Below, one piece after another: positions 1-24,719 of a stretch of DNA of 38,774 nt; position 1 is the first letter of the stretch; each line of letters begins with the position of its first letter. A program made the position numbers and the translations under genes. Source of the stretch: Klebsormidium nitens (Eukaryota; Plantae; Klebsormidiophyceae); NCBI GenBank assembly GCA_000708835.1, contig DF237696.1:1-38774 (forward strand). The letters are read 5' to 3'. The notes below the pieces were generated by a model. That model was not told the origin of the DNA, made no database searches, and was given only the letters and a program-made list of their open reading frames with translations.

Positions 1-432
1 CATATCAATGACTCAGCATACTTATCTTGCACTTTACGAACTATTCGGTGGCGTAATTAATCAGCTAGCATTAACTACGTCACATCAATACTGTGCTCAT
101 ACGTCGCAACCTGACGTAGTCGCTTAACTCAGGGGTTATTCTCGCAACGACGTGCGGTTAGACTTAACCAAAGCCCGTTCGTTACACTTCTCGAGCCGGG
201 TACAAAGTAGTAGATATGATATTCTGTCTTTTGGAAGAAGAATATTGATGTCGAAGACCGATACTTAAGGCCCAAGGTTGCGACTGTAGGCCGTGACGTT
301 TTGCAATCTGACAAAGCATCATCCTTCAGAAATAAAGCATAATCCTTCAGGAGTTGGGTTCCCGCTCTTTCTGGTTGCCGTTGCACGGGCTTTATCATAG
401 GTTTGCTCACTCGGTTCTGAGGTTTATCGCAG

Positions 433-3400
433 GTACAACTTGCTTCCTCTCTTCTACGAAAATGATGACGTCAGCAGGAACGTCACGTACAATACGCAGC
501 TCAAGCACTTCAAGCAGGCGTACCGCGAGCAGGAGATTGTATCCAGCAAGCTTACTCATGCGCCGCGCGGCGCATCAGTGCGGCATGCTGAGAATAACGG
601 GTGAGCATTCACACTATTCGGGACCCTTCGAGAAAAATGTTTCCTCGTCAGATTGTCAATTCCAAGCTCAAGCTGCCACAACCCGTTATCCGAACGCACT
701 TGCGTGTTGCTCTGGATGCACGGGCAGAGAAGTGTCGAGAGTGCAAGGTCGTCAGTCCAAATGAGTTCTTGAGGGCGTGCTTCTCGTCAGCCAAAGCCAA
801 CCCTTCGAGCATGACTGACACCACAAGTCTGCAATGATGTGTGGGGTCCCGCCGAGATGATCTCGGGAAGGCATTAATTACAGGGCTCTCAACCAAAGAT
901 TACTAATCATCTCCGTATCTTTTGTGCAGCGGCAAAGAAGTTGAGAGTGCTCGGCTCGGCCGTTGGATCTACGACCACTTTCGGACTTCGTACCTGCATC
1001 AGCTTCCAGTTGGGATCATGCTAGTTCAGGCGGGGTTCAAGGACGATCGCAAGGGGTACTTCCTGCCACGTGGTCGGGTGCTCCCCTCCGAGGACGAGTA
1101 CCCAGGGCTTGCGAACCAGATCTTTCCATGGCCGACGAGGAACTGCGGAAGGTGAAGCAGGTATACTTCTTACACTGCTTGAACACCTGTCCAGCATCTT
1201 GACTTCGGAGACGACTGTTTCTACTCTGCAAGCACGCCGCTTGCTCTGCTTGTTACCGTTGCCGCTTTCATCAGGATCTCTTGTAGCAGCCGCAGTGTTG
1301 GGAAAAAAAGGCTTTTCCTTTGTGCAGAGGAATCTGACGGGACCAGCCGGCCAGTGCGACATCGCTGCGCAGAAGTTGCTGGAGCTGCTCATTGCGCTGC
1401 GGGCGGTGCTGCTGCAAGACGTGGCACTCCTTCAACGGATGGGCAAGTACGAGAACCATCCCATCAGTTACCACCACTTCTTCGACGGAGAGGAATGGGA
1501 AAAGTTTTGCGGCGCTGTGGCAGAGGTGTGCAACAAGCCTGCTCCTCCTCCGGAGCTCGCGAACATTCCCCCTGAGGTAAGGAAGGACACGGCCCGAGAT
1601 CCTCACTATTGAGGACGTCACGTGCTAGAGGACTCCGTTGATGATGTCGAACAGGGCACGAGCCTGTATTAGTAGGGTTGATTGTATATGAACTCAAGCG
1701 ACTACGTTTGTGCAGCCCGCCGCTGTCTGTCGGGAAGGAAGCCACTTCGAACTGAAAAACATTTGCTGCGACAATTCGAGGGACAGCAGGATCCACAATT
1801 AGTTCATGCGGACAGGCTCAGATGAACGGCAGAACATTCTGTCAAGCTTTTGTCCTGATGAACACAAACACTGGTCCATGGATCCGTAGGTTTGACTTTC
1901 AAGGTCACCACGCCCTTAGCTTGTGATGAGGGCAGATGCTTCTCAGAAAAGTAGTTCACAAGATAACAAGCGAAACAGCTCAAGCTGTATTGGGCAGGTC
2001 ACTTCTCGCATAATTTGAAGACACTGAAATGCTTTTCCGTCGGGAGGGGTGTCTAATAAATAGCAAGAGCCAGCTTTCCTTCCGCCTTTGAAACCGGCTC
2101 GTGGGTGCAGTTGGTTGCCGTTTTGCAAGACCAACAGGTCCAGCTCGCGCGTATCGAGCGAGAGAGCCAAGCCTCGAGGGAGCGCGAGCAAGCCCTGCAG
2201 AGCCAGATGTCCGCCGTGCTGCACGTGCTCGAGCGGCTTGTGTCAGCGTTTCCTGGGGTTGACAGCCAGGCACCGACACGTGCCCGGTCGGCCAAGGCCG
2301 CTGCCCAATCGCCAGCAGCCCCGGAGCCACGGCGGACCGCCATAGGGTTTTTTGCCCGCCCTCCGTCGGCGCCTGTCGCGGCCGCTGCGGAAGCTGCTCT
2401 TCGAGCTGTTGCTGAGGCCGCACGAGCGGCAGCAACACAAGCCGACATTGAACAGGCCACTGCTTCGGATCCGAATGAGAGCGGTCAGGCGAGCGACGAG
2501 GGGCGCGAAGCGGCGGGTGAGAGGCCGGGCTCTGCAAACACCGAAAACATTAATCTTCTTGGTCCGGATCAGGCACTGTCTAGGGCCTAGATTGCGTCAA
2601 ACGGTGTCAATTGCTGTTAATCTCGAGAGTCGCTCTGGAGCACCTCTTATAAGGTGTCAAAGTGCGGACTGCCTTATTGCAAGCGAATTCAGGTTCCAAA
2701 GATGTCTCAATGAATCACAGCTCGTTCTCAACCCCTTTCATATTTGATCTGAAACTGAGTCGCTTGTGACCTTTACTGCGAAGCAAGGGGTTCCTTCGCA
2801 TTCAGGTACAAGAACGGGCCGACAGTCAAGCGCCTTAGCGCTTCTGACGGAGCTAAGTTAGATTTCACCATGATTGTCTCCAGGTGTCGACTCGGTTGTC
2901 CGTCCTTCCTCCGCTCCTGTTGCGGCCGCGGCTGAGGCGGTCCTCAGAGCCGCTGCCGAAGCAGCTAAGGCTGCTGCCGCGCAAGCGGCAGCTGACGCGG
3001 CCGCCACCCAAGATCCGGACGCGCTAAGCGGCCAGGACGAGAACGAGGCACGTGCCCCTCGGACAACCGCCCAGGAGACCGTTCAGCCTGAGACAGGTAA
3101 TTGGGAATCTGAAGCACGCAGTAGTGATATTGATCGCCGTGGGTTTGCAACGAGACTTACAAGTTGGTGTCACTTGTAAAAACTTCAAAGTTTGCAGATG
3201 TTGCTGAGCGTTGCATTTGTTGATTGAGACTCATCTTTCGCTCAATCACTGTCGTTAAGTGATCGAGAAGCCTTTGCATCTTCATCGGAGTTTCCAGTTC
3301 GCATACGACAGAGGTTCCGCCCAACATAGTCCACCAGGATAAGTCGGCATCTTAACAGGTCTACAGTAGGAACACATATTCTTCAAACATTGAGGTTCGA

Positions 3401-4403
3401 AGGTCCTGAAATCTCATCGACTTTCCTTGAGGTATTAAGGAACATTCTTCCAGTTATCAGTAAGCCTTATATTCTTGTCAATCAATGAATGGGTCCTTCA
3501 AACGTCTTTATACTAGAGTCCGTATGCTTTAAGTGAATTTGACGTTGTTCTCTGCACTGATCAGGTTTGCGTGAAGGGCTCGAGTCTGGGGCTTTCGAGC
3601 CGGCAAACGGCAGTCAGAACGTGACGAGCTTTCTGGAAGGTGAAATGGAAACGGAAGAAGCGACCGGGGAGGGCTGCCGGCAGCCTCAGTCGGAGGAGGA
3701 AGGGGCGAAAGAAAGTGAAAACCGTTCGGAGGGCGATAAAACAGGAGAAGTGGAGAGTGAGGCAGGCGGGGAGAGTGGGACAACTTCGCAACCTTGTTCG
3801 GAAGGAAACAACGGAAAAGACGACGGGGAGGAAGCGGGTACTTTTAGAAGCTGTCCGACAGCAAGTCAAGGCGATGTCGCCGTCGGGGTTGTCGGGGTTA
3901 GCCCAAGTGGCTCGAGGAGTGGCGGTTTAGGGGCAGCCGATGAGGGGATAATGGAAGATGCTTCGGTGGTCCCCGAGTGGGCTTTGAGTTATATGATTGG
4001 GAGACACTACACCTCGGTTGCAGAAATTTGGCAAGAATGGGCATACGGACAAAAAGGGTACCCCTTGTCTTTGAGACGTATGGAGGAGCTGTGGGGTACT
4101 CGCTGGAGAAGAGGGCGGGAAAACGAAAGCAAACGTCTCTCAAAATTCCGGAAGATTACAAGTCTGGTCGAAATTGTGTTGAGGCAGGGCAATGTAGGCG
4201 AGGCGGCAGCAGTACAGGCCGTTGAGAATAGCATGATTGCATGTGGCATAGATCCGGCGCAGCCATGGGAATATTGTGAGTTGCTTCGAGAGTCAAAAGC
4301 TGGCAATTCTGATGAACAAGACGAACCGGCCAGGCAAAAAGGAAAGCGGAAAAGAACAGGTCAGTCGGAGTCAAATAGGAAACGCAAGAAGTCCATCGCC
4401 TAA
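433..4403 (+). pseudogene. Crypton-type (CryptonF-like) tyrosine recombinase gene, NDC10_II-like YR plus C-terminal GCR1_C; spliced, one frameshift, 5' end degraded or outside the window
   Basis: Hand-built exons 433-600, 930-1160, 1328-1576, 2111-2516, 2884-3096, 3565-4403 are joined by GT-AG introns with matching phases (2,0,0,1,1). The spliced protein reads TYNTQLKHFKQAYREQEIVSSKLTHAPRGASVRHAENNG/GKEVESARLGRWIYDHFRTSYLHQLPVGIMLVQAGF..YFLPR..LANQIFPW..DIAAQKLLELLIALRAVLLQD. This matches the Crypton/Ndc10-II pattern, with catalytic-type HxxR, W and Y residues. A 1-nt loss near 1128-1130 (FPW-PTRN instead of FPW-ADEELRKVKQ) shifts the frame. A possible decayed GKTNQ-like motif lies at 156-172 (weak). 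Confidence 0.85.
3987..4230 (+). other. GCR1_C (Gcr1/Hot1-type DNA-binding) domain in the last exon of the Crypton gene
   Basis: YMIGRHYTSVAEIWQEWAYGQKGYPLSLRRMEELWGTRWRRGRENESKRLSKFRKITSLVE matches the GCR1_C pattern Y.M.R...TV.DLW.EW..G....PS..ELE..YG..WR. It is followed by a basic NLS-like tail (KGKRKR, RKRKK). Confidence 0.85.
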
Positions 4404-7400
4404 TTGACGAGTTCACATAGCTAGGTTTGCAGTAACTTCAAGTACGAGTTGGGGAACGAGAAGTAGACTGCAATTGCTGGCTGTTCAAGTTGTGAGTACT
4501 GGCATATTGCAAGCAGATTAGCGCAGTACTTTGCCGCAGGATCGACACAAGCATGAACGCATATGCTGTATGGCTATTTTGAACCACTCCGGATTGATGC
4601 ATGTGTTGTCACTATATACGCGCGTCACGTACATGCTTGACGTTGGCAAAACTGTTCGATATGTTCTCAGTGCAGGTAGGTATGCATGCAATCATTGCGC
4701 ATGTTAAACGTGAACTTCGAAAACAATCATCTGAACGGGCGCTCATGCCAGCAAACGCAGCAACGTCACACTACGCCTACGTACTGATCGGAGGTACTAT
4801 TTATCCGTGTCACATTAGAATCTGATTGGCTAGACGTACGGGAGTTGCGATCCGCGTGATTTGCATTGGCATGACTGAGAGACTCAGCAGTGCATGCTAA
4901 ATATGTAAGCCCTAAGTCACAAGGCCGCCGCGCCGGCTGCATATGACGCGCATATATCCATTGCAATCATACGAACTTTTAGTGATCGCACAATTGAATG
5001 CGTCCGTCTGTTGCAACAATTGAGCTAGTCGAGATCGTCCTTTGAGCTGACAAAATTCTGTAGGCTACTAAAGATTCACAGTGGTAGACAAGCTTACTAC
5101 TGTGCGCGGCGGCGTGATACGATGGTGGCCGCGCGATTGCCAGTTGGCGTGAATACCAGAACACGGTTCATGCACCTTAGACCTGACCAAAGGCGTGCTC
5201 AGAACCTTGTATTCCGAAGATCTTGGCTAATAGTTCTGCCCGAAAGTTCTCTCCCAAGATTTACCACCATCGTCGCAGGGACAACAGCCTTCGGATCTCA
5301 TGCTTGCGCGGTTCAGTGGGCCCCCTCCGGTGTTGGCCGGGTTCTATATGCCCCCCCTCAGGCTGGCCGAGACACCTGCAGGCTGTCCATGGAAATGTGT
5401 TGGGATGAGACAGTGGGAGAAGCGAAGTAACTTCAAAGTCCCTACTTGAACCGCCATTGATATGGCATTCTGTGTTCTTTTCGGGCCCGACCATCCTCCA
5501 CTACTACTCCACAAGTTTTTTCGACCTGACCCCGGTTGCAAGACAGAACTTCAACTTTCTAGAGTGGAATGGAACGACCTGCACGACTTCCGAGAACTTC
5601 AAGGAGCAGATTGTAGGGCGGTCAGGTCCCATCAACAGTGAACCGATGTCCGTTTCGATGCGTGCTTTCTATCTACGAGTCAATTGTATAAGTTTCTTCG
5701 AAAGTTTCACAGTCCGTTTCTTCATTCTGAATAAAGACAAGCACAGACATCAGGATGTCAAGATTCCAACTAGGATAAGATTACCGCCTTTCCGCGAGGA
5801 CGGCGACGTCAGACTGTTCACAAGAGACTAGATTCAACGTATGAAAACGTAAGCTGACAGCCTGGCTGTACGTCAAAGGAACTAAGCTGGCAGGATCCTT
5901 GCAACAACAGCCCAAGCCTACGCTTCCAAGCGAATAAGTCTTCCCTCACCGTATGGCGATGAGATGAACTCCGCTGCTGGGTTCTTCAAGGCTCAGTACT
6001 CGTGCCCCGTGTCACAAATTGTCTTCGAAGCGGCGGGCTTGGACGAACTCCGAGAGAGGAACTCCCAAGAAATTGCATCCTGCAGGTTATGATATAAATG
6101 TTAACAAAGGTTAGACTGATCTGCACAATAAAGCAGATTGAACCTGCTCTTGCTCGAAAGACTTAATATGCAGTCGGCTCAAAAGATGAGCTCAAGAGAT
6201 GATTGAGTGGCAGTTGATGAAAGGCCAGATCATTGCGGTTATTATTTGGAGGACTGCTCAAGCTCACACGGTACTCTGTATCCGCTCCATTTGAATAACG
6301 AGCTTCGAAAAGGAACAACCATATCCCCTCCATAACCTTGGATGATTCTCGAAGTTGGACAAGCTGAATCTAGCCCTGAAAGCTCTACTAGTACACAACG
6401 TCTTCTGAAAGACCATAAAAAGACTGACAATCGACTCAACGTCGGTTGGACATCTGTAGTTCTGCCGAAACTGTTGCTGCAAACTTCACAACGACCTCTA
6501 CTCTTGCAAGGAAGGCATCTCTTTTCCTGATTTGAAACAAGAGATGCATATACTGCTGACTTAGCCTGAGGCCTATAACCAATCTGCATTTGCAGAAGGA
6601 CGCAGAAAGGGCAACCATAGAGCTTGTTGATAAGCTTGTTTTCGAGACTTGGCTTCCTTGCATTCTTTTCTGACCAGACCCAGCAAAAAGTTCTGATAGA
6701 GGACAGCATTGGTCCATGAGTTTGCACCAATGCTGTGCTCCATCCTTGGTAGACCACATGCTATGACTAAGCAAGGCCCAGCTGTACAAAGATTGTTCAA
6801 ATCAAAGCTGCGTGCCGACGCTGCATAACTTACCACAAGCTCGTGCTGAACTCTTCCGAGAGCATCTTGACATGACATCTTAGCTGGATACTGCCTCGAT
6901 TTCAGGCCCTGAGCAACTCATATCAAAGAGCCAAAGAGCTCAGCTTCCTAAACTTCCTTGCTTCTGATGAATTCAAAAGACTGCCTTGAGCGTATCCATG
7001 CCTTCTAAGCAGAAAGCTCCTTACCTGAGCAATGCTGGCATCAGCAGTGCAGCTGTGTCCAGTGCTGTAGCGGGGCTGTAGCCAGCTGGGGCTGTAGCCA
7101 GCTGTGCAGCTGTGTCCAGTGCTCAAGGCAGCTCAAGGGTCTGCCAAAAAGGCGCCATGGAAGATCAGTGAAGCTATGCAATGGCAAACTTGTGCTAAAC
7201 TTGTAAGGCTCAGCTAGGGGGCAGTACGGTAATAGGTCAGATAGGTTACAGGCTGCAGCCCACCAAGGCTGGACTCGGGATGCAGTGGAACCCTAAAACC
7301 ACGATGCGGTAAAGGATGGCATGTATAGCTTATTAGCCTCGGTTGGGTTAAGTCGAAAACCATTCTCAAGCTTCTGCTTTAAAAGTCCCAAATAACCGAC

Positions 7401-7755
7401 CTCGGGGCATCCGACCTGGATGGAAATTCCTCAATATCTCAGGAGCTGGACCGACAAGGAACTTCGCGTCGAAAAAACAGGGCCAGGCTCAAGGTCCTCT
7501 CGCGCAACTGAAAAGCGACGGTAAATTGAGGTGACCGGTCCGACCGTGCGACGGAGCCTGGCATTCGCCGCGAAACCGTGCGATACCGGCGGTCCGCCGG
7601 CTGAAATGTTATAAACTACAAGTACAGTCGTGGCAAGTGTCAAGGACCTTGGCACGCAAGGTTGGTATCGGTGGTACGTACAGACGATCCGCAAAGTACA
7701 GCATACCATCATAGTACACACAAACACAATGTTTGATTCCAAATATTACTTGCTG

Positions 7756-8268
7756 NNNNNNNNNNNNNNNNNNNNNNNNNNNNNNNNNNNNNNNNNNNNN
7801 NNNNNNNNNNNNNNNNNNNNNNNNNNNNNNNNNNNNNNNNNNNNNNNNNNNNNNNNNNNNNNNNNNNNNNNNNNNNNNNNNNNNNNNNNNNNNNNNNNNN
7901 NNNNNNNNNNNNNNNNNNNNNNNNNNNNNNNNNNNNNNNNNNNNNNNNNNNNNNNNNNNNNNNNNNNNNNNNNNNNNNNNNNNNNNNNNNNNNNNNNNNN
8001 NNNNNNNNNNNNNNNNNNNNNNNNNNNNNNNNNNNNNNNNNNNNNNNNNNNNNNNNNNNNNNNNNNNNNNNNNNNNNNNNNNNNNNNNNNNNNNNNNNNN
8101 NNNNNNNNNNNNNNNNNNNNNNNNNNNNNNNNNNNNNNNNNNNNNNNNNNNNNNNNNNNNNNNNNNNNNNNNNNNNNNNNNNNNNNNNNNNNNNNNNNNN
8201 NNNNNNNNNNNNNNNNNNNNNNNNNNNNNNNNNNNNNNNNNNNNNNNNNNNNNNNNNNNNNNNNNNNN
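7756..8268. other. Assembly gap (N run)
   Basis: Run of n characters; ORF-track entries crossing it are artefacts. Confidence 1.
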
Positions 8269-8434
8269 GTGACGTCTTTTATAATTTTCCGGACCCTATG
8301 GTTAGTGACGTCAGAGACCTCTTTTACAATCCCTGTTCCGACTTGGTCCGTCTTGGTGTCAAGGAACCCTCTTGGTGGTCTTTATGTTCCCGTGAAGAGC
8401 CGGGACAGCATAGTGAAGCAAAATGGTCAATCTA

Positions 8435-9253
8435 CGCTATTTTATTAGTGTCTCCGGTCGACTTGTCAGGGTAAATTGTTTCGCATGGCGTCAATCTGTG
8501 CACCCATTGGCTCGTGGTCTGACGTGTGTCAGAGCGAACTGTTTGCTCGGATCCGCTAACTGCGGTCCCTTTGAATGGGCCCTACCACGGTACCGGGCTA
8601 CTTTTTGGTCTACGGAGCATACGCCGGGGCCCGGTACCCGGGACGACTTCTGAGGTACGCGTACGGGTTCGAGAAACCCAGGTAGGTATATCACAGCGGT
8701 GTCATTGAACGGGTCAAGTTCCGTAAAATTTGTCATAAGTAGTTTCAGTCATATTTACAATCACAAATCTGGTCAGGTAATAAGGATTAAACAGACCTGA
8801 TCGACCAGGATTTCCGGTCACTTGTCACAATTTACAGTCATACAATCACAGTCACAGTCAGAATCACATTCACAATTCACACTATTGTAAGTTCGAAATA
8901 TAACAATTCGCTTTAATAACATACCGGTTGGTTCACATCAAGTCAAACCGTCGCGGTCACTGTCACAGTCACGGTTAATACAGTCGTGTTACGGTCACAG
9001 TCACAGTCACAGTATTAAGATTGACACAGTCACAATCACAATCACAGTCACGTAGGCATCGGGTCACGGTCAGCTGTAAACCTTGCAGGGTTGATTCCAC
9101 CCATACAACTACCCGGCCGTCAATAGTAGTGCCCGGGGGACCGTTGTGCAAGGTGTGGTACCGACCGGCCAGTTAGTGGATGTGGTCATTTATGTTCGCG
9201 GCACGGGAGGGTATTAACACAAGAAGCATGCCAAAGACACTAATAAAATAGCG
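8435..9253. mobile_element. Non-autonomous TIR element (MITE-like), TA-flanked, Tc1/mariner-type junctions
   Basis: Perfect 21-bp inverted repeat TACGCTATTTTATTAGTGTCT (8433-8453) / AGACACTAATAAAATAGCGTA (9235-9255). The outer TA can be read as a target-site duplication, leaving a 19-bp TIR. No transposase ORF inside. Confidence 0.6.
8824..9051. repeat. Degenerate hexamer repeat (CACAGT/CACAAT)n inside the TIR element
   Basis: Repeated cacagt/cacaat units, e.g. atcacagtcacagtca, ggtcacagtcacagtcacagt, gacacagtcacaatcacaatcacagtcac. Confidence 0.8.
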
Positions 9254-9269
9254 TACTTCGTCCTACTTG

Positions 9270-11330
9270 CATCAGTGAACGAGAAATGAGCATAAACAGT
9301 GTCAACAAGAATGAGCCTCCTGAACACCATCTGAGCGTAAGAATCAGATCGCGTGGCATGGCGAATCTCAGACAAGAAGTCGGGATCAGGCTGCACACTT
9401 GACACTGCAGCGAGTACGGGTTGGTCACCAGTAGGTACCGGTTTGTGGTGTGGTCTGCGCGAAAGGGCGTCTGGTAGTGTGTTGAGCCGGCCCTCCCGGT
9501 AGGTGAGCTTTAGGTCGAACTGGTTCAATTGCTCCTCCGACCGGTGATGGCGCGACTGAGTCATGAACTCGAGACTGAGAGGAAAGAGAAGTGGTCGGTG
9601 GTCACTACGGACAGTGACCGGTCGGCCCAACAGGTAGTGTCGCCACTTAGTGCGTGGCATGCACGAGTGCAAGCTGCTCCCAGTCGCGAGCAGAGTATTT
9701 CCGCTCAGCGCGGTTGAGTCGCTTGGACTCGAACGCGACCGGTAGAAGATCGCGATCTGTAGCGGTTCCCTGGAGCAGCACTGCACCAACTGCAAAGTCT
9801 GAGGCGTCAAGATCAAGTGTATAGGGGAGGTTAGGGTCGTACGGGCGGAGGATGGGTGCGTGGGTTAGGGCAATGTTGAGGGATTGGAACGCATGTTCCT
9901 GTGCGTCCGTCCACTCGAATTTTGCCGTTTTGGTTAGCAAGTCGTTGAGGGGTGCGGCAATCTGCAAAAACCTGCTGCGGACAAATCGGCGATAAAATCC
10001 TGCAAGGCCGAGGAACGAGCGGATATCGCCAGGGTCGTTTGGCCGTGGCCACTGGCTTATGGCGTCCACCTTGCATGCCTCCATGGACACCCCATGCTCG
10101 TTGATGACGTGACTGAGGAAGGTCACCTCGGTACGCCACAATTCACACTTGGACTCCTTGGCGTACAACTTGTGGTTGCGCAGGCGTGTGAATACCTCCC
10201 GAAGGAGGCGCTCGTGCTCATCTGCAGTCTTGCAGTAAATGAGAATGTTATCCAAGAAAATGACCACACCCCGGTCGAGCAGATCACGGAAGATGCCGTG
10301 CATGAGATCCGTGAACGCGGCTGGGGCATTCGTCCGACCAAATAGCAAGACCAACCACTCAAAGTGATTGTACCGCGTGCAAAACGCAGTTTTAGCGACG
10401 TCAGCAGGATCGATGGGAAGCTGCCAATAACCGGAGCGCAAATCAATCTTATAAAAGATTCGCGCCCCGTGCAGCTGATCGATAAGATCGTCTGCCCGGG
10501 GTAAGGGGTGAGCATTCTTCACCGTCTGCTTGTTCAGACCCCGGTAGTCAATGCAAAACCGGAGGCCCCCGTCCTTTTTCGGGGCGAAGAGAACATGTGC
10601 CCCCCACGGTGAATTGCTGGGCCGGATGAAGCCCTCAGCAATCTTGAAGGTCGTCCAGAGTACGGCGGAGTTCTTTGAGCTCAGAGGGGGACAGGCGGTA
10701 GATGTGGCGGTTGACCGGGGTAGCCCCCGGTTCGGTCTCGATGTGGAAGGGCATCCCCCGGTCAGGTGGTAGGTGGGCGGGTAAATCAGGACTGAGGAAA
10801 AACATCGGGGATGTCAGCGCCTTCAACCGAGTACATCTGTCAGATTCAGGTGCCAGATTGGGTACAATATCAGGCGAAATGCTGGGTGTAACTTGAAAGA
10901 CCGGTTGCTTCTTCTTGAGCAGCTTGTTAACCTGCACAGAGCTCATCCGATCAACCGGTCATCATACTGCGCACGCAAGGCCCGCTTGGAGGGCCTTCCG
11001 GCCTCTAGCGTTACAAATCGAGCGTCGTGGATGAAAGAGATGGTACGTTTCTTCCAGTCCACGCGCTTATAATTACCCAACCCCAACCAAGGTAACCCAA
11101 GAATGATATCGTAGGTTATGTCTGTTACAGTGAATGGTAGGTCCTCAGTGTAAGTGGAACCGATGGAGAAGGGCATCGGGTTCACTCTACGAGAGACCGA
11201 TTGCTGTGGATCGTGGGCCAGACCACCTGACACACTCACACCCTCAACAACAGAAGTTTCTATTCCTAACCGAGCAGTAAACGATGCAGACATGCAGATG
11301 TCGGTCGACCCACAATCGAGAAGTATACCC
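9270..11330 (-). pseudogene. pol: Gypsy pol remnant: aspartic protease, reverse transcriptase, RNase H
   Basis: PR motifs LLDCGST and YDIILGLPWL. RT motifs FAPKKDGGLRFCIDYRGLN, KIDLRSGYWQ, FGRTNAPAAF and FLDN (catalytic YxDD broken). RH motifs LDASDFAVGAVL, VAFESKRL, SDHRPL and DALSRRP. Stops at 10943-10945 and 10635-10637, and a frameshift near 9650. Confidence 0.95.
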
Positions 11331-11468
11331 TACATGCACGACCCGAAACCTGACCACGCAGAAATATCAAGCGAGAAGATAGCGGGGCATTTTGCCCCGG
11401 TTTGGCTGTTTGGTCCCTGGGATGTGGAGACTTAACTCTGTGGCCACCAGTAGACGTCCCGAGATCAT

Positions 11469-12331
11469 CTACTGGGGCATGGAGTTTTCATGCTCCCTAG
11501 TAGGCTCATACCCAAAGTCGATCAGGTCGGGCTGCTCCTTCTGTGGCCCCGTCTGCTCGACTTGGGCGACCTTTCGCTGCATGGGAGCCTGCATGGGGGG
11601 TTTGTTTGGGCAATCGGCAATCATGTGCCCTGGTTGCCTGCAATAAAAGCGTCCCCCCTCCTTGAGCAAGCGATTTCGCTCAGACTGGGTTAGTGGAGCT
11701 GGTCTGCACCTGAGGGCGTCGATCTCCATCGGGATTGGGCCAGATCCGTTCGGGTTAGCAGACCTGCTTGGCACATTGTTAGTGAAAGCGAGAGGCGGTC
11801 TGGCACTGGAGCACTGAAGCGGGACAAGAGCTCAACCGAGAAGGCACCCCAAGCATACAGTGTCATGTTCCCAGCATGTGCCTGGCACGTATAACGCCAC
11901 TAGGACTTAGCACCCCCAGAGAGCAATCCTGCTGCAAGAATCACATGCTTATCTGCGGGTGTCTCCATCCCCAGGAAGTACTACCCACAGTCAAAATTGA
12001 AGTTCTCCACAGCCCCTGGGGTGAAAGAACCATCATGGACTTCTGGGAATTTGAGCTTGGGAGTTTTACCTCCCGTCCCAGTGCTTGCGCCAAGCCCCGC
12101 CTCAGGTGCTTGCGCAGCTGGTGCTGCCTGGGTCACTCCAGCATCAGCAGCACCAAGTACAGCCGCGGCCACAACAAGTACAGTCTCTTCCAGCTCACGC
12201 TCCCCGAGCTGAGCCTGTACCTGCCGAAGCTCGCCCTGGAGCCCTGCCACTAGGCCTGTGAGCTGCTGGAGAGCTGCAGTGAAGCTCGCAGCTCCTCCTT
12301 GCGCCTCCCCAGGGTCTGCCGGCGTGATCAT
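11469..12331 (-). pseudogene. gag: Gypsy gag remnant
   Basis: KLKFPEVHDG..AVENFNFDCG*YF..LLSGGAKS*W..AWGAFSVELLSRF, then GPIPMEIDAL..ERNRLLKEGGRFYCRQPGHMIADCP (zinc knuckle with its first Cys lost). Two in-frame stops and an apparent internal deletion near 11790. Confidence 0.9.
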
Positions 12332-12423
12332 GGTCCCATGGTGTTACAGGAGAAGAGATTGAGCTAAGAAAAGAGAGGAAGAGCTGAGAAAGAGCGGGAC
12401 AGGAAGGAGAAGGATCATAAATC

Positions 12424-12435
12424 CTCTGAATACCA
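12424..12435 (-). promoter_or_regulatory. Primer-binding site, tRNA-iMet-like
   Basis: The minus strand reads ...TTTACA T TGGTATTCAGAG immediately after the LTR end. The canonical iMet PBS is TGGTATCAGAG; this one has an extra T. Confidence 0.75.
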
Positions 12436-12436
12436 A

Positions 12437-12712
12437 TGTAAACGGAAGCTGATTTCGCTAAGGCATTCTCCGCTTATACAAGGTAGAAACTCCTAGAGTA
12501 CTTGAGCCAGTGAGAAACTTGTAGAGAAGTTGCTGCCCCAAAACCAGAGAACTGAGAATGAGGGCTTACGTGGTCACGAGAAAGTCCACCTTTATAGTGA
12601 GCCGTAGCTCTCAGACACAAGATGCAAAACCAGAAAATATCGCAAGACTGAATGTGCAGTACAAGATTCGAATGTAGGCAGGGAGCCGTTAGGCGAGGCG
12701 AAGTGGCTTACA
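12437..12712 (-). repeat. 5' LTR of Gypsy relic 1
   Basis: Starts TGTAA next to the PBS and ends TTACA at 12708-12712 (5-bp inverted termini). The minus strand has a CTATAAAGG TATA-like box near 12590-12598. There is no partner LTR in the window, so the distal end is inferred. Confidence 0.65.
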
Positions 12713-13856
12713 TAGGACGGTTCAGATGTGTCAAGCATGCCAGCTGGATGTGAGCTGGATGCAATAACGGTCGAATATGTAATTCAAAGATCCACGTGTT
12801 ACACACTTGGTCCCTCGAAGCATATTCGGTGCCTTCGTTGTGTCGAAGTGTTGTACCTAATCTTTGTTGCCTATCTGGAGCAAACCCAATTGTCGCCTTT
12901 CAGGCGCCAATTTGTCGGGGGGGCAAGTTTGTGATGTGCGAAACGCCACGTATGCTCGATTTTTACAGGGGCTGCTTTATTATAGGGTGAAGAAGTCTTG
13001 GACAAGTCCAAGATGCATTGGCGACGGTACACTTGGCAAGTTGGCGGGGCCGCATGTTGTCCTATCCAACATGTGTCATTCTCGATACCGAGACACGAGG
13101 AGCAGTATAAGTGGATGTCCGCGTAACTATCCGGGCATTTCCCCAAGTCCGTGAAGAGTCTTGGAAGAGTTTGTCACGTAGCTACCGGTAAGATGTGAGT
13201 AGCCCGGTACTGATAGTATACGCAGTCAGTTCATGGCACGAGGCTATCTTATGCAGACTCGTATCAAGCATTACGGCACGCCGCAAAAGTTACTTCACAC
13301 GCGCCTTGAAAAAAAAACGAGACGGCAAATTGCTTCGAACCATCGAAATCACCAGTCGATGACTTACCGGTCTGTGGCCTGCCAAAACAGCGTTCGATGG
13401 ATAAAATCTGCTTTACCGAGTGGCGATCCAGTCGAGCATTCTCACGTTCGGGGTTTTCAAACGCTGGTGGGGAAAACGATAGCTGGTTTTTTGTAAACCA
13501 AAAAAACCGAGCAAAACAGAAGTGTCGCAACACTGAAAAGTACATTTTCGACATTCGATCTTCATACGTGACGAACATAACCGGCCGCCAAGTCAAATTG
13601 TGAGCCTACTAGGCTTACATCGTAGAATCGAAAATTTTCCGATAGCCGGACGGCATATTCGGGGCATATTCGAGCGCAGGCCTCGCGATGCCCGACAACT
13701 TCATCACTGTGAAAGCGTGTTGTCGAAGCATATTGACACCATGACCATTTCAAATTGCCAAATTGAAACACTTCGCAGTATGTTACAGGCACCTACGCCT
13801 GCTTGAAGTAAGTACCGTTTCTTCGAGCGACGGTGATACGCCGTGTAAAACCTTTT

Positions 13857-13880
13857 TTTGCCCCTATTTATAGGGGCAAA
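13857..13880. promoter_or_regulatory. 11-bp-stem palindrome centred on TATTTATA, ~125 bp upstream of the methyltransferase ATG
   Basis: TTTGCCCCTAT-TT-ATAGGGGCAAA is seen directly; a promoter role is inferred from position only. Confidence 0.35.
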
Positions 13881-14005
13881 TTACTGAGCAAGTGTCGCAG
13901 AAGTGTTGCAACACTTTCGGAGTGTCGCGTAGTTGTTGGCCGACGGTCGGTTGCGACCGTCGAGGGACCGTCGCAAACCTAGGTCCGCATATAACTAGCA
14001 TTTGC

Positions 14006-15524
14006 ATGATGGCTCATTGTCCAGAGATAACCAGCATGAAGCAGTTTAATGCAAAAAGTGCGGTGTTTCTGGTCAGAGGCGGCATACTTCTTCTTTTAAG
14101 CGTCATAACGTTATCTGTGCTCATTGTTCTCCTTCCTCAAGGTACCCTCAATCAAGCATGGTTTCGGCAGGTATGTGTTCATTGACCTATGCAATGGTGG
14201 CTAAGCAATGGTTGCTCTTTTTGGAACAATCAATGCAACATGTTCAGAATTCCATATCAACTCTCTGAGGAAACAATCTTTGAATTCCACCGCCAGTCTT
14301 CAATGTTCTACAACATTCTGCTGCGAGCAAGAGGTATAGTGTGGTTTGCAAAGGTAGTGATATTTGATTTAGATGTAGACTAGGACGGGGGGCAGAAAGC
14401 AGAGTTATCATGGAGCATGCTTTTTTGTTGATCTCTAGGCTTGGAGACAAAATTGTTAATTCTATGCCACATGTACCAGGGTTTGTAGGTCAAAAGCTGC
14501 TTGTGTGTAATATTTGTGGAACACATCAGGTAACACTTTTGTTTGAGAACCCTGACCATCATTTGCATATGGACATGTTATCTTGAAAGCTTAACACGGT
14601 CTATCTTTTCGTTGTGTCCACTTTCTCGTCAGAGACCAACTGCCAGCCAATGTTTGATATATGTGTGCATGTTGATTCTTTCTGCAGGCATGCACCAGTA
14701 GGACAGAGGGCTCCACTTCTGGGGCCTATGGGGGAGATCCATACTGGGACAATGCTGCAGCAAGCCTTTCACAGTGGCAGAATACTTTGTTTCTCAGGCT
14801 ATCGGCCCTTTATCGATTGAGCACCGTATGCAGCCAGTTAAGCTGTCCTAATGTGCCAGACGAGCCACCTGCCCATGACCGATTTGATCTGTTTGATCCT
14901 GTGGTTGGCTGCCCAACCTCGCTGTCTCTTGCCCGTTGGGGAGGAAAGGGCGATGGGGGCAAGTGGCTGTGTGGGGTGGACACTTTGAAAGAGGGGTGCA
15001 TCATACTCAGCCTTGGAAGCAAGGGCCAGTATGGCTTTGAGAAATCGATGCTGACAAACACACCTTGCGAGGTGCACACTTTTGATTGCACTTTCGATGG
15101 ATCCAGCCAAGGACCTCGCCATCACTACCACAAGCTATGCCTTGGCAGCGCTGAGAAGGCGGCTGAAGACCCATTGTTTGTCAGCCTTAGTGAAGCGGTA
15201 AAGATGCTTGACGTCACAGTAGTGAGCATCCTGAAAATGGATATTGAAGGTTTTGAGTACGACGTTATGGCAGCGTGGCAGAAGACAGACCCACTGCCAT
15301 CCCAAATCTCGTTCGAGTTGCATTGGAGTGGTGTGTATTTCAAGACAAATCCAGGTCCAGATTCCAAGACTGTGATGTGGAAGGGCAGGGTTGTAAGTGT
15401 AGCAGAGTTGGCAGTTTTCATGACACATCTGGCCAATCTAGGCTATGCCGTGGTCAGTAAGGAGAACAATATCAGGTGTGGCCATTGCAGCGAGCTTACC
15501 ATTATCAGAGTCCGTCAAGGTTGA
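14006..15524 (+). CDS. Membrane-anchored SAM-dependent methyltransferase, METTL24-like / Methyltransf_22 family; two exons (14006-14170, 14688-15524), ~333 aa
   Basis: Exon 1 encodes a hydrophobic anchor (GGILLLLSVITLSVLIVLLP) and ends CAG|GTATGT. The acceptor TTTCTGCAG at 14687 resumes in phase 0 and stays open to TGA at 15524. Motifs: GDGGKWLCG, CIILSLGSKGQYGFE, CEVHTFDCT, ILKMDIEGFEYDV, QISFELH, ENNIRCGHCSELT. The start codon could be 14006, 14009 or 14034. Confidence 0.85.
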
Positions 15525-17890
15525 ATTTAAGTCTCTTTTTCTTTAGAATCCCTTCCAGTCTGTTACCTTAGAATTTCTTCCAGTTCACAGATGATCCGGA
15601 AACAAAGACCGTCAGTCGATCTTTGCTTTTTTGGGACTCTTGTTGATAGTACTAGAGGAGAATACGTTGTGGTTAATCGACTAAAGATACAAAGATTTTG
15701 CACATTGTGGGTGACTGCACAACCTAGACAACTCCCTACAATGTCGTTTGCCTTCCCAATCATAAGGGTGTACATAGGACTCTTTTTTTCAATGGCTTTA
15801 GTTTGGGGTTTTGCCACATCATCTGGTTGGTTTTGTTGGACAACTCGAATGACCGCATGCCACGTACTATCCGGCATCATGTAGACAAGTCTACTATTGC
15901 GTGACACCCTAACACTAACTCTCTGGTATCGGCAACTTCCGCGCAATCATTATTGGACTGTCCATATGACACCCTCCTAGGGATCAGTCCGCATGTCGAA
16001 GATCCTCACTCTGTAGTAGTGTGCAATTCTCAGCAACCGCCTTTTGGCTCAGTAGTGTACCGGGTGGTGGGGGTGTCATATAGGCTGCGCGGCAAATTGT
16101 TTTTTAACAGATCACACTCTTTTTTACATTCATGGATCGAATTGAAACTCGCTGCTTAGCTTATCTGGAACAAAGCATTTTGGAAGTAGCTTGGGAATGT
16201 GTGCCCCTAAACCCGCCCCAGTGAGTCAGCCCGGCCCGTTGTTTGATGGAGAATTGGTAGGGGAATTCCAGAATTCGGATGAGATAAGCTTTGAAGACAG
16301 TGCTGGGGCATTGGGGGGCGGCTGAGCCCGGGGGAAAATAGCACCCGAGCACTATGAGACGGACCGGCAGCTAGTGCATATCATAGCTATTGGACTCGGG
16401 GGGGCCCTCGCAGCCTTAGCTGTCAGTATACTTTTCACTGCGCCGTTCAAGACCGGCGTAGCTCAAATCACTGACAACAAGTTAAATCGATACCGGCCTC
16501 GACGACGTATTGCCCTCTTATCCGATGATCGTGCGTAGGTCTACCAAGTGCGCACGTGCCAACATCAACTTCAATCTATATAGACCGCAGAGTGTATCCT
16601 TCTAACGCTCGCGCCTGCGCCCTTCTGTGGCAATTGCGTACCCCCGGCTTTTTGTCCCACGTGGTTGGGGTGATTGGAGCACGGTTGTGGCGCACTTAGC
16701 TCGTGCGGGGCAGCGCGGCCAGCTTAAGGCATGCGCGCTCAGCCGCGATAGTCGCCTGCGCGGCGGATTTGTGTGACGATTCGTGTCTATTAACTGCATT
16801 CCGAACTTGTCACTGTATTTTACTGTGCCTATTGGCGCATCTACTCTAGTCTTTTACATGTAATAGTGTTACCTTAGAAATCGCCTTGCTCGGAAACATG
16901 CTAGCTAGGTGCATGATGCAGATAGGTCATTAATGCATAACAATGATGCAGACTGGCTGGTTGGTCATATCATCAAACAAGCCCACGGGAAGCCCACCTA
17001 ATCAAAAGTTCATCAAAAGCATTCACCAACATTTAGATAGTTGAAGCGGGTCGGTCGGCGCGCAATGAAAACAGAAAACAGTGGGTCAAGCACTTGGTGG
17101 CCGCAAGGCGGCGCACACAAGCGGATTCTTCCTATCTCTTCCAGGAAAGAATGTTCAATTTCTTCTTGTCTCTTCTCTTTTGATCGTGTCTTTCCCATCT
17201 AGCCTATCACGGGCAGTCAGCGACCAGAAGTCATGCTGGCAACCGACCCCGTATCTACTCGGCTCTTTCTAGAATTTGGGTCTTAGTTCCACGTGATCTA
17301 CTGCGTACCATCTTTAGATTCTAATTGAAGACTACGAAGCTTCCGGTCACTTTCTTCTGATTCTAGAGTGTTCCGAAGGGTCGCCACGTGTCGCCTCCCG
17401 ATTCGGCGCGCAGAAGTAACGCCACTTACTTTAGCCAATCAGATGATGCTCGTTTCCGCTTGTATGGTCGGGGTGTCGCCACCAATGATTGATTCCGATT
17501 CACAGGGTTTGCACGGTTGGTGTCTGTCGCGCGTACGCGCGCGCAGGGCGCTCAGTCACGTAGTGGGTCTTTGAGGATAGTAAGTTTTTGAGGTAACATA
17601 GACTGGAGTAGATGCCCGCATTTCGATTCCGATGCGTCTGGTCTTCTATGTTTCCCGTTCTTCAATATGCTCAGCAGCGGATCACGTGCGTCTCTGGCAA
17701 TCAGACTTTTTCCGGTCACATGGTGATCATTGTCATGATTTGGCAAACGAGATGCCGCATATCTTTCATCATGTGCGAGTCTGCAAGTATATCTGCATAA
17801 TGCATAGAATGAACGTCGTGACATTGCGTGCATGCATAAGTTAGACTGAAGCCGAAGGTTCGTCCCTAACTTGCTTACCTATTCTGCCTA

Positions 17891-18167
17891 GGCATCGTGT
17901 CAAAACATATGTGCAGTGGCGTCCGGTTTTAGCAATTTTTCTGGAGGGGCTGGTGGCCGGTTCTCGGAGCACCGCCAAGATGACTCGAAGGGGCTGGTGC
18001 CAGTGCCCGGCTTAGAATCAGTTCGATTTCGCGTATGGGCATCGTGTCGAAACATATGTGCAGTGGCGTCCGGAACTCCGGCTTTCCGAATTTCCTTGGT
18101 TGGGCTGGTGGCCGGTTTTCGGAGCTCTCCCTGGCAAAGAGTCGAGGGGGCTGGAGCCGGTGCCCGG
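17891..18167. repeat. Two diverged direct copies of a ~120-130-bp unit (period 147)
   Basis: GGCATCGTGTC(A/G)AAACATATGTGCAGTGGCGTCCGG...GGGCTGGTGGCCGGTT.TCGGAGC...GGGGCTGG.GCC.GTGCCCGG occurs at 17891-18010 and 18038-18167. Confidence 0.85.
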
Positions 18168-19305
18168 TTGACCTTAAATGACAGAGTTTAAAAAGTCATG
18201 AACTTCATGAACTTCCGCCTTCAAATGTTTAATCAGCCTCGTCTGATGTATCCATGTACCTACTCTCGCCAGCCCTCTGCAAGAGGTCCAGGCACACCCC
18301 AAGTTCCAACCGACCGGTCTCAGAGAAGATATGGTCAAATTACGGGTTTTGTCGACAATGATACTTAAGGGCCCAGCCGCATATACATCCGTATCCTTGC
18401 CTTATACAGCTCCGAAGTGGACTCTAGTAACCAATGGGAAATCCAGTGGTCGTGTTTTTTAAATAAAACGTAATGATTTGCAGGCCCCATCTATATGTAT
18501 CTGATTCCACTAATATTTGCCGTCGGGGCTTCGGCAGTGGGCACCCCCCTGGTGGCCGGTGTTTTTCGGGTCGATTTCTGGCCGGGCCGTACCGTAGCCT
18601 AACTGTGAAGTTTGCTACGAATTTTTGCTACTACGCGGATTTTGGCGATGTTGGCGACCCCTGAGGATGCGCGAGCTCTGAGTCGTGTGCAAATCGCTCT
18701 GGTGATTTTGCACGTACGATCACTGAATAAAACATTTAAATAAGAAGTGTGCTACAATAATGCCTAGGTGTTGGATCAGTGTAATTCTGGAGCCTTTGCA
18801 TAACTTGTCAGCATTCGTCATAGGTAGCATTGTTGGATACTTCGAAATTGAACGCTGTTCCGATTGTTTCATGCGCTATGCACCTGGGTGTGCACGCGTT
18901 CATTAATACGAAGTGACCATCACTCCTGATGTGCGCGCCAATTTTGCCCGCCGGCTCGGACTTCATTTGAAGAAGTTTGGATTTGCAAAGCGCGGTACCC
19001 TACCTGGCAGCCAAGTATGGTACCGGTAAACTAAGCTAGAGTGATATTACGTGCGAGCATTCCTACTTGAAAGGTCTCCGTACAAAGGGGAGTCGGAGCA
19101 GCTGGCAGTTGCTTTCTCGGTCTCGCGCCAGGGCCGCGCATATCTACATGCGAAGGATAGCCAAGCTGGATTGTAGTACTAATATCATACTAAAATAGCC
19201 ATAGGTATTCCTCTTCAGGGCTAGTATCTAGACTAGGATGTGGTAACATCACGGACCTGAGTTCCCGAGGTATTACTTCCCTATTCAATATTCCCTATGC
19301 AATAA

Positions 19306-19658
19306 GGTTGCGCGTCGACCGAAAACCTACCACCCCCCACTCTTATGTTGTTAGAACACGTGGTTCAGAAAACCTTGGTTTCGGCAGAGGTTTGCAGCAA
19401 ACCCTTCACATCTGTGCGCCCTGTATCACCCAATTCTGCACCAAAATGCTCCATCCAAAGCAAGTAGGCAATGGCCATGTGTGGTGGCAATTGCCGACAA
19501 GGCTTCTTTGAGCAGAAAAGATGCGAAGTTGATAGATGTAGGCGACACAATCACTTCAGTGTTGCAAACCTCTTACAAACCCAGATTTATGGAAAGCAGG
19601 CCTCTGATTGGTTGAAAAACCTGGGATGACCTCGGAGGTTTTCGGTCGACGCGCAACC
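19306..19658. mobile_element. Tourist-like (PIF/Harbinger) MITE, 353 bp
   Basis: Perfect 23-bp TIR GGTTGCGCGTCGACCGAAAACCT (19306-19328) / AGGTTTTCGGTCGACGCGCAACC (19636-19658), flanked by TAA on both sides (19303-19305, 19659-19661). TAA is the PIF/Harbinger target-site duplication. Confidence 0.88.
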
Positions 19659-21500
19659 TAATCAACTTCCCAATTCAACCTTAGGTCGGATCATTTGCCG
19701 CCAGCCTCCGGCCAGCCAGCAGTCCGACTGAAGCTCCCTGAGCTGCCAGATAATTGCACATTGCACGTATGCATCGACGCAATGCCAGTGATAGCATGAG
19801 CTTTAATGCATCGTGTGTTCAATAATTGCTGCATTTTTAGTACGCCCCACAGTATTACTGCATGCGTATGGCCATAGGCTGTACTACTATTATCATATTA
19901 GTACACTGAGCAGTAATTCGTTTGCTATTGCCTAGTTTATCTTTCTATCTTTCGCAAGCCTGACAGTGATGGTCGGCTGAGGGCCCTGCTGAGCTGGAGC
20001 AGGTTCCTAGTGCCTAGTCAGCTGGGGCGAGGCTGACACTTGGACACGTCACGGCAGCTTACACCGCTGCAACTTAGCCCCGCTACAGTAGGTGCTCCCA
20101 TCACTCCAGCACCAAACAAATGTATACCAGCCACCATCAGCCGCAGCCAACGTTGGCAAAGCAGATGTCAACGTTTAAGTCTCCAGGGCAATTGATATCC
20201 ACCGCTTGGAGGACAATCCGCCGTCCAAAACCTAGCAGCACTGCTGCCAGTGACAGCCAAGTCGTGCATCGAAGGCTTGATAAGCTGTTCACCTTAGCAC
20301 AGTCAGACGTCATGATCTACACGACTTACTAGCTGGGCCGTCCCCGCTGCGCCTTGAGAACTGGTATTGGGCCGCCTTATCAGTCAAGAGGAGCTCATTG
20401 AAAAGCTTTTGATGTACGTACGTAAGCAGCGCAGTTAATGGCGGGTGGAATGAATCAAACTACTCGGTAGAATCTACTTTCGAGGGGCAGACTCGTGATT
20501 GCTTAGCTCAAAGTTTGATCAAACGTCACGTTCTTCCAGGAGCTTTCCGTAATGCCTTCCGTACTGACACGTTGGTGGGTTGCAACAAAAGCAGCGTGCG
20601 CGGATCGGAGCACATCTCGTGCCTACCCACAACCTGATAACAGTGTCCCTCCACAAACACTGTTCCAAAAACCTTTCTAGGCGTCTGCCTGAGGTTCTCA
20701 GACGAAGAAGGGTAAGCCTTGCGTTTGTCTTGCTTGCTGTCCAAATGCGGTCTTTCTTTCTTTTTAAGCCACTTGAAGGAGTACATGGCTTCTCAAATGC
20801 AATCAGCAAATACACAGCTTCAATGATACTAACGCATGCTTTAGGCAGAATCTTTGAAGCGAGTAGCTAAACCTTTAGGAGCTTCCAGTAGGTGTAGCTG
20901 TTGTTCTATATTGGCAGCCTCCATGCCTCTTTTGTACTTTCCTTCGGCCCGATTTCTGGCCATCTTCCGTTCCTTGCTCATCCACATCAGGCCTACCAGC
21001 CAGCTGAGAGGTGTGACTCAGAGTCAAGCGTGTGTTCACCCAATTGACAAAGATCTGAGGTCGATCACCTTCCTGACTAGGACTTCTCATTCCGCATGCT
21101 CGACTCTAGAGTGGCACACAGCCCCGTCCAACATCTGCTCTGTACATTTTGACAACGTTTTTGGCAGAGTGAATGGTACTGCACGACGTCTTTATTGAAA
21201 GGGAACGAGTCGCCTTCGCGTGTCCAAGTGCAGGAAAGTCTGCCCGCGCTGCCCGCGGTGAGTCATTTCTGCACACAAGTGAGCTTTCGTGCTTGTAGCA
21301 CACAATTAGACATTCTATGATTCAAATCTGCTTGTCAAATCTATCAGATAAAGGATCGACGGACTCCGAAAAGACTACCTAGTGTCACAGGCAAGGAAAA
21401 TGTGTCTGGACGAATAAGTGTACTGGAAAGGTTACCTCTAACCATACTGGATTTCCGCGGAAATCCGGTTACCTACACTAAAACCTAAGGTTAAGGTGAC

Positions 21501-21660
21501 GAAACCCTAAAATCGTCCCGGGGAGGTGGTTAACCCCCCACCCTACTCTAACCCAACCCCAACCCTAACCGCCGACCAGCCCCACCCGTCCCAGGGAGGT
21601 GGCGTACCCGCCACCCTACCCTAACCCACCCTAACCACCAGCCAGCCCTACCCGGTCCCA
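21501..21660. repeat. Degenerate telomere-like (CCCTAA) repeats within a ~70-bp tandem unit
   Basis: AAACCCTAA at 21502-21510 and several ACCCTAACC/ACCCTAC motifs. The unit CGTCCC(A/G)GGGAGGTGG...CCACCCTAC.CTAACCCA starts at 21514 and 21587, with a partial third copy at 21654. Confidence 0.7.
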
Positions 21661-22171
21661 GGCAGGCCCGACCCGAAACCACGTACCGTACGGTTCATAT
21701 AAGTTACGCAAACCGGTCACTACAGCGAGTCGGCGGTAGCGTAGCGGCTAGCGTTAGCCTACTGTAGTGTCTCAGAACAGTGCATCGGTTCAGTTCCGGT
21801 AGGAACACCGAGTTCCTTTTGCTACGACAGTGTTCTGACTTAGTCCTAGTGTGGTTGCCGCGATTTTCGCGGAATTCCAGCTTGGTAAAGTTTAGCTTCC
21901 CCCTAAATAAGTGTGCAATTTGCAAATTGGTCTTTGGTATTTCCACTCTGTTTCGCAAAAGCTAAAGTTCGAGCGCGGCAACTCGATCGGCCTGGCAGAT
22001 GCAAGCCCGCTCTCCTCGCGCTGTCGCGCCTAGCTGTCAAGTGCGTTTACTATCAGTTGGACACTTTTCGGTGCTTCTGATCTGGGGATCTTTATCCATT
22101 GTTCCATCAGATGATGCAGCTCACTATACTTCACCATCTGCGCTGCGCATGCTCATTGTAAGCTTTGTTTT

Positions 22172-23614: not shown

Positions 23615-24719
23615 AAAGAACCGTTGACCCGAGACGCTCAGGAGACAGGTCCTCGAGTCCCCGCATGTCACTATTGCTCGAGCTTTCCAGGTCCAAGGAA
23701 TTGCGCGCGGGTCTACAACAACTGTCGGACATACAAAAGTTGCACTGGCTGACGTCACAGCGTTGGACCCAGTTTTCCATGGACTAGTAAAGACTCAGTC
23801 TGATCCATTGTTCTGACATTGTTCGTAACGTCGATCTTTTGCTCCCACATTCAGCTACCGGTCTGCTTGTAACAGATTTTGGGCTTTGATTTCATCACGA
23901 TGACGTCAAACTTTAGATAGTATCCTGCCACTTGTGGATAAGTCGATCTGATTTTGGTCCACGTTCTTTCCTCGAAGCTCATGCAAGAAACCGTCTTTGC
24001 AGGTCGGCTCCTTCAAAATTGTTGGGCTTCAACTCCTGTCTGATGAAGGACGTCCCTGCGTTGAACCTTTCTTGCTATTCTTTGCCTCAAAGCTCTTTCT
24101 TTGCAGGTTTGCCCGTTTCAACTAGCTTCATAAAGTTCGGTTAAGAGAAGGCTTATACGCAAGGGCCACGCCTTTTGAAACTATCTGCCCGGAGGCAGCT
24201 ACCTTTCGAACACCACAAAATCGAAGGCTCCTTAAAGAGGGCGTCCCGTGACCCGTAACGCCTGACGTCAGCCGCATACGGTGAAATTCAATCGCACGGA
24301 AAGTCTGCCCGCGTGACGTGAAATTGAAAACCGGTGTGAGTTCGACCTGCACGGCGTGCGGAAAAAGGAGCAAAGTTGCTCCGACTGAGTTTCGATCGCT
24401 CGTTTTCACGGTGAAATTCGAGCGCCCTTGCCAACTGTGCTAGGAGTCGATGTGCTTCCGAGCTGGTCTGGAGAAACTCGAGCCGGGACGGTATCTATAG
24501 ACTGACGCCCTCTTTAAGAAATTAACCATGTGGCAGTTAACACCTCCACACAACCGGATCAAATGAGCGGAAACCCTTGAGATCTTGTAGAAGAATGATG
24601 ATGATGAAGTGAAAGATAAAGGGGGAAAGGGGGAGGGGCTGATGCATGGGCCTTTATACTATATTTCAACCCGTTCATCATCATCGATTTGGCCCTACGG
24701 CGGATTTTGTAAGGAAAGC

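Follow-up and report, generated by a model that had tools for sequence, protein, structure and literature searches.

A probable CryptonF-type transposon gene, incomplete and rich in introns, in the streptophyte alga Klebsormidium nitens

The 38,774-nt stretch analysed here, referred to as the window, is contig DF237696.1 (positions 1 to 38,774) of the Klebsormidium nitens genome assembly GCA_000708835.1. Near its left end, the forward strand carries part of a gene that combines a tyrosine recombinase (YR) with a GCR1_C domain, as in the CryptonF group of DNA transposons. Positions 433-4403 contain six open stretches, which are separated by five GT..AG introns of 329, 167, 534, 367, and 468 nt, in this order. 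The open reading frames (ORFs) that run past the donors end within a few codons, at 604, 1612, 2590, and 3179. Read-through of any donor would therefore lead to an early stop, and splicing is required to connect the pieces. The phases agree at the junctions of exons 1 and 2, 3 and 4, 4 and 5, and 5 and 6. A first-pass annotation of this DNA had described a phase-consistent model of six exons. Its exons, its GT-AG introns, and these four junction phases are upheld, whereas the frame of exon 2 is interrupted by a TGA codon.

The exons and the other features of the window are listed in Table 1. For comparison, the protein GAQ91375.1 of K. nitens, encoded by KFL_007750010 and denoted P0089, serves as a paralogue. 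All of the recombinase motifs quoted in the first-pass annotation (KLTHAPRG, LGRW, TSYL, AGF..YFLPR, IFPW, and LRAVLLQD) were found in the window. Exon 4 is 89% identical to the corresponding part of P0089 and ends at an identical junction, and a Pfam search found no family in it. The stretch downstream of the stop codon matches the tail of P0089, which indicates that the repeat unit reaches at least position 4466.

Table 1. Features of the window, with matches of the exons to a custom profile of full-length family proteins (positions are those of the window; P0089 is the K. nitens paralogue)
Feature	Positions	Strand	Content	Profile positions, E-value, and aligned motif
Exon 1	433-600	+	Opens at an acceptor with a split codon; encodes YNLLPLFYENDD...SKLTHAPRGASVRHAENNG; carries the HxxR box	275-322; E 1e-9; skkTHagR aligned on SKLTHAPR
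Exon 2	930-1160	+	GKEVESARLGRW, IYDHFRTSY, YFLPRG, and IFPW; then a frameshift and ADEELRKVKQ to the donor at 1161	329-385; E 4e-12; GrW...Y...YflpR...fpw
Exon 3	1328-1576	+	C-terminal end of the NDC10_II/YR domain (DIAAQKLLELLIALRAVLLQD...); 91% identity to P0089	402-468; E 8e-13; LRtVlLQD
Exon 4	2111-2516	+	Coiled-coil-like stretch (QQVQLARIERESQASREREQALQSQ), then an Ala-rich stretch	
Exon 5	2884-3096	+	Ala-rich, repeating the end of exon 4 (PSAPVAAAAEA.LRA...); 93% identity to P0089	
Exon 6	3565-4403	+	Acidic/Gly-rich linker, GCR1_C (about 3993-4229), basic tail, stop codon at 4401-4403	574-662; E 2e-10; GCR1_C
3' untranslated stretch	4433-4466	+	NFKYELGNEK and a stop, homologous to the C-terminal tail of P0089	
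Ty3/gypsy-type piece	9214-10519	-	RVT_1 and RT_RNaseH_2 (reverse transcriptase at 9647-10519); about 5 kb downstream of the gene	
Methyltransferase ORF	14787-15521	+	Methyltransf_22/FkbM domains	
Ty3/gypsy-type piece	29679-30995	+	RT_RNaseH and Integrase_H2C2; within a gypsy-type element at about 25.5-31.6 kb	
Assembly gaps (N)	7756-8268, 27645-27806, 31639-32526			

The domains of the gene were identified by profile searches. GCR1_C (PF12550) gave a clear Pfam match in exon 6, at residues 143-221 (E 4.8e-12; 46.4 bits against a cut-off of 23). The Pfam matches to NDC10_II were weak in the single exons and collinear, with profile positions 192-258 in exon 2 (E 0.25) and 273-315 in exon 3 (E 0.0062). 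A custom profile was built from seven full-length proteins with both NDC10_II and GCR1_C (P0142, P0134, and P0160-P0164), none of which came from the window, and it was run unfiltered against a six-frame translation of the window, cut at the stop codons into 1157 pieces. Only four of these pieces matched. They belong to exons 1, 2, 3, and 6 and follow each other in collinear order, and the next best piece had an E-value of 1.6. The gaps between consecutive exons were only 6 and 16 profile positions, so that removal of the introns restores a continuous protein. An NDC10_II-type recombinase domain is thus present, but just its C-terminal half lies within the window. These matches agree with the original proposal of a CryptonF-type gene that joins YR to GCR1_C and carries spliceosomal introns. 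A relation to yeast Ndc10 had also been proposed, and the family profile matches the Ndc10 structures 4ACO and 6GYP at E 2e-14. A search of the PDB using exon 3 alone returned only noise.

The catalytic residues of this enzyme family form the set R-K-H-R-(H/W)-Y. The H, R, W, and Y of this set are found in the window, the exons for the first Arg and the Lys lie outside it, and the paralogue has both as LRG and GKTN. The HxxR box of exon 1 (HAPR) places its His at 557-559 and its Arg at 566-568. The Trp of GRW (964-966) and the Tyr of TSY (991-993) are encoded by exon 2. The distance is 23 residues from R to W and 9 from W to Y. In Cre, these residues are R292, W315, and Y324, which is the same spacing as in the window gene. 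In an alignment of eight family members, four residues did not vary, namely Arg in LRG, Lys in GKTN, and the catalytic Trp and Tyr.

The paralogue came up in an exhaustive HMMER search whose query was the GCR1_C portion of exon 6. Its gene is on a different scaffold, of 35,526 bp, and UniRef names it an Ndc10 domain-containing protein. Each of the six window exons is 89-94% identical to P0089 (about 90% overall), with shared junctions, and P0089 matches Pfam NDC10_II at E 9e-19. The window gene and KFL_007750010 belong to one transposon family. A paralogue this close in K. nitens supports the earlier view of a charophyte-grade streptophyte alga as the host. The first-pass annotation had also expected that automated annotation would miss the gene. 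This expectation does not hold, because the paralogue already has a spliced NCBI model and a UniRef name that mentions the Ndc10 domain. Unlike the window copy, KFL_007750010 keeps the upstream exons with LRG and GKTN. It is itself defective: half of exon 1, with the HxxR box, is missing, and most of GCR1_C is treated as intron in its gene model. The P0089 model ends with ...AYGQKG/NFEYELGNEK, which implies a GT(4058)..AG(4432) intron; its removal would delete most of GCR1_C along with the normal stop codon. Both of these splice sites and the NFKYELGNEK tail also exist in the window. This splice of the P0089 model may be a genuine alternative, or it may be an error of annotation. No second copy of the family was found elsewhere in the 38,774 nt, and the dispersed copies seen amount to this one paralogue protein.

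The defects of the window copy become clear in comparison with P0089. The frame of exon 2 that encodes LGRW..YFLPRG..IFPW meets a TGA codon at 1153-1155, and only the neighbouring frame (ADEELRKVKQ) connects in phase to exon 3 through the donor at 1161. P0089 reads IFPWADEELRKVKQRNLTG at exon 2 and ...NQIFPWADEELRKVKQRNLTG... at the frameshift, where IFPW is followed by ADEELRKVKQ and RNLTG. The window is therefore without one G of the tgg/gcc run after 1131, a 1-nt deletion that makes a frameshift, whether real or an assembly error. The first base of exon 1 (G433) completes a codon begun further upstream: the paralogue has a Trp before YNLL, which needs TG from an upstream exon. No piece of the window matches positions 1-275 of the custom profile or residues 1-97 of the paralogue. 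The exons that should encode LRG, with the first catalytic Arg, and GKTN, with the Lys, therefore lie to the left of the window. A candidate for an upstream exon within 1-432 was rejected. It encodes TSHQYC at 77-94, similar to the TSHQFC that stands before LRG in P0089, and its similarity score was equalled by 76 of 2000 shuffles and by 7 of 144 real control segments, which is chance level.

As assembled, the window copy cannot make the recombinase protein, because the Arg and Lys exons are off the left edge and one nucleotide is missing after IFPW. With the frameshift in exon 2 and the missing 5' part, the six exons are not an intact YR and GCR1_C gene. The copy is dead and decayed, or truncated by the assembly, and it lies in a transposon-rich region. 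If the missing G were an assembly error and the 5' exons lay past the scaffold end, the copy would be a full-length and possibly active Crypton. The HxxR box, the W, the Y, and GCR1_C are all intact, the deletion sits in a short G run, the three N gaps of the window indicate a draft assembly, and the window edge cuts exactly inside the gene. However, the annotated paralogue is also defective, so that decayed copies are the rule among the two seen, and the protein divergence of about 10% between them argues against recent activity. This alternative is considered unlikely.

The neighbourhood of the gene contains two pieces of Ty3/gypsy-type elements, and one of them led to a further alternative. 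The gene could be the recombinase gene of a YR retroelement (DIRS-, Ngaro-, or PAT-like) instead of a DNA transposon gene, as an ORF with reverse transcriptase (RT) and RNase H lies about 5 kb downstream. That RT is encoded on the reverse strand and belongs to the Ty3/gypsy type, and it does not make the window gene DIRS-like. The pairing of NDC10_II with GCR1_C is the CryptonF architecture, and no RT-like or methyltransferase match was found on the forward strand in 1-6000, with the 5' part of the element outside the window. A retroelement origin is highly improbable.

A search for direct repeats of at least 60 nt in 4400-24000, sought as long terminal repeats bounding the neighbouring retroelement, gave none, and Rfam had no match in the window. 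The best named relative of the methyltransferase ORF is a K. nitens protein with 64% identity, followed by chlorophyte proteins with about 45%, in keeping with K. nitens or a very close relative as the host. Relatives at 64-77% identity were found in K. nitens, JGI metagenomes, and Logan assemblies, and no identical protein was found within the length limits of the search. These similarities suggest that the ORF may belong to a multi-copy family in Klebsormidium-type algae.

A domesticated host gene also has to be weighed, that is, a transcription factor or centromere protein derived from a Crypton, like yeast Gcr1 or Ndc10. NDC10_II and GCR1_C are domains of the yeast Crypton-derived genes (PMC3212892), and the window gene is intron-rich, as host genes are. 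The yeast proteins Ndc10/Cbf2 and Gcr1/Hot1/Msn1 share these domains with the window gene and come from single-copy host genes without catalytic residues, the catalytic site having been lost in Gcr1 and Ndc10 (PMC3212892), whereas the window gene keeps H, R, W, and Y in a decayed repeat copy. The retained catalytic residues, the frameshift with a premature stop in exon 2, the paralogue of about 90% identity on another scaffold, and the retroelement neighbours in transposon-rich surroundings all favour a transposon copy over a host gene. Domestication is given only a slight chance.

The combination of YR and GCR1_C defines the CryptonF group, whose description was based on fungi and oomycetes (PMC3212892). 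The window gene resembles these elements (Goodwin 2003; Kojima & Jurka 2011, PMC3212892) in having a YR (NDC10_II) followed by GCR1_C. The motifs conserved in the family are LRG, GKTN, THAxR, GRW, Y, YFLPR, and LRxVLLQD. Unlike the fungal and oomycete elements, it has at least five spliceosomal introns and a long Ala-rich, acidic linker with an internal duplication between YR and GCR1_C. The duplication consists of the Ala-rich end of exon 4 (2360-2516) and exon 5 (2905-3060), with the pattern PSAPVAAAAEA.LRA.AEAA.AAA.QA. It is also found in the paralogue and is therefore older than the split of the two copies; the introns that flank it have no clear similarity. In the intron presumed to precede exon 1, a 17-nt motif (AAAGCATCATCCTTCAG / AAAGCATAATCCTTCAG) occurs twice within 313-350 at a spacing of 21 nt.

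In green algae, two autonomous Crypton families have been reported from Chlamydomonas reinhardtii by Lopez-Cortegano et al. 2023 (PMC9977147). One of them, CryptonF-1_cRei, was the most active transposon in strain CC-2931, and according to the figure legend it has YR and GCR1_C domains and introns; the target of the C. reinhardtii CryptonF elements is CACCG/CAYCG (PMC9977147). The first-pass annotation knew of no described Crypton family in the lineage of the host, should this be a charophyte. With CryptonF-1_cRei active in Chlamydomonas, the present element is not the first of its type in the green lineage. The window gene is like CryptonF-1_cRei and the other C. reinhardtii CryptonF elements in its green-alga host, in its one intron-containing YR and GCR1_C gene, and in having no RT. 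Compared with them by description, it differs in its streptophyte host (Klebsormidiophyceae versus chlorophyte) and in being a truncated and frameshifted copy.

Further relatives were found outside this assembly. ORF fragments that correspond to the last exon occur with 46-65% identity in other public assemblies (P0001, P0077, P0078, and P0081). P0001 is 55% identical to exon 6 over its full length and starts at the same exon boundary. A word-based protein search, within its length limits, found one relative of exon 6 and six relatives of the YR part of P0089. Residues 1-290 of P0089, which cover the YR part, are 27-31% identical to fungal proteins from Tilletia, Coprinellus, and Apiospora. 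Among the matches listed, there was no Chlamydomonas, oomycete, diatom, or animal Crypton protein, and all named relatives were fungal. Two metagenome scans, one with P0089 and one with an alignment of exon 6 relatives, yielded no related locus. The best GCR1_C matches outside Klebsormidium (P0074, P0076, P0084, and P0092) are proteins with 5-7 tandem GCR1_C domains and no recombinase domain, and one of these four comes from the Mortierellomycota fungus Gryganskiella cystojenkinii, the other three from ENA assemblies. The known members of the NDC10_II clusters in the ESM Atlas are mostly Streptophyta or Oomycota; these are leads only.

The reading favoured by these data, with a probability of about 0.85, is that positions 433-4466 of the forward strand represent one CryptonF-type DNA transposon gene of K. 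nitens or a very close relative, of which the 3' two-thirds are present. Several points weigh against this interpretation. The intron junctions are predicted from sequence, and all homology searches were run exon by exon. The copy number rests on a single paralogue protein, and the frameshift could be an assembly error, as it falls in a G run. In addition, the 5' end of the element is beyond the window. The repeats detected in 1-6500 are short and no more than expected by chance.

An intact protein of this family would have about 650-760 amino acids, as sized from full-length relatives. It would be composed of a Cre/Flp-like tyrosine recombinase (NDC10_II), a coiled-coil linker, and a C-terminal GCR1_C DNA-binding domain. 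If it acts as in the Crypton model and in CryptonF-1_cRei, such a protein would cut the element out and integrate it again. The YR would mediate the excision, and the insertion that follows would be site-specific, joining a short sequence at the terminus to a target that matches it, as suggested by the C. reinhardtii elements (PMC9977147).

The family is already in NCBI and UniRef, although it has not been described in papers, and the literature searched contained no paper on Cryptons of Klebsormidium or of any other streptophyte. Novelty within streptophytes specifically is possible. The paralogues have at least five introns in common, the last-exon relatives have 46-65% identity, and P0001 shares an exon boundary with the window gene. 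These similarities hint that the family may have resided in the host lineage for a long time. It can be tentatively proposed that CryptonF elements are long-term residents of streptophyte algae and form an intron-rich and diversified lineage that is undescribed for Streptophyta. Such a lineage could derive from an ancestor shared with chlorophytes and could supply GCR1_C- or Ndc10-like host genes of the plant lineage, a proposal that is possible at present rather than probable.

The individual value of the window copy is small, because it is dead or incomplete and the public protein databases already contain close relatives. The finding is a modest addition and not a surprise, since CryptonF was already known to be active in Chlamydomonas. 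With it, CryptonF is documented not only in chlorophyte green algae but also in a streptophyte alga near the base of the plant lineage, in which the elements carry host-like spliceosomal introns. It thereby bears on the age of Cryptons in the green lineage and on the origin of the GCR1_C/Ndc10-type DNA-binding domains.

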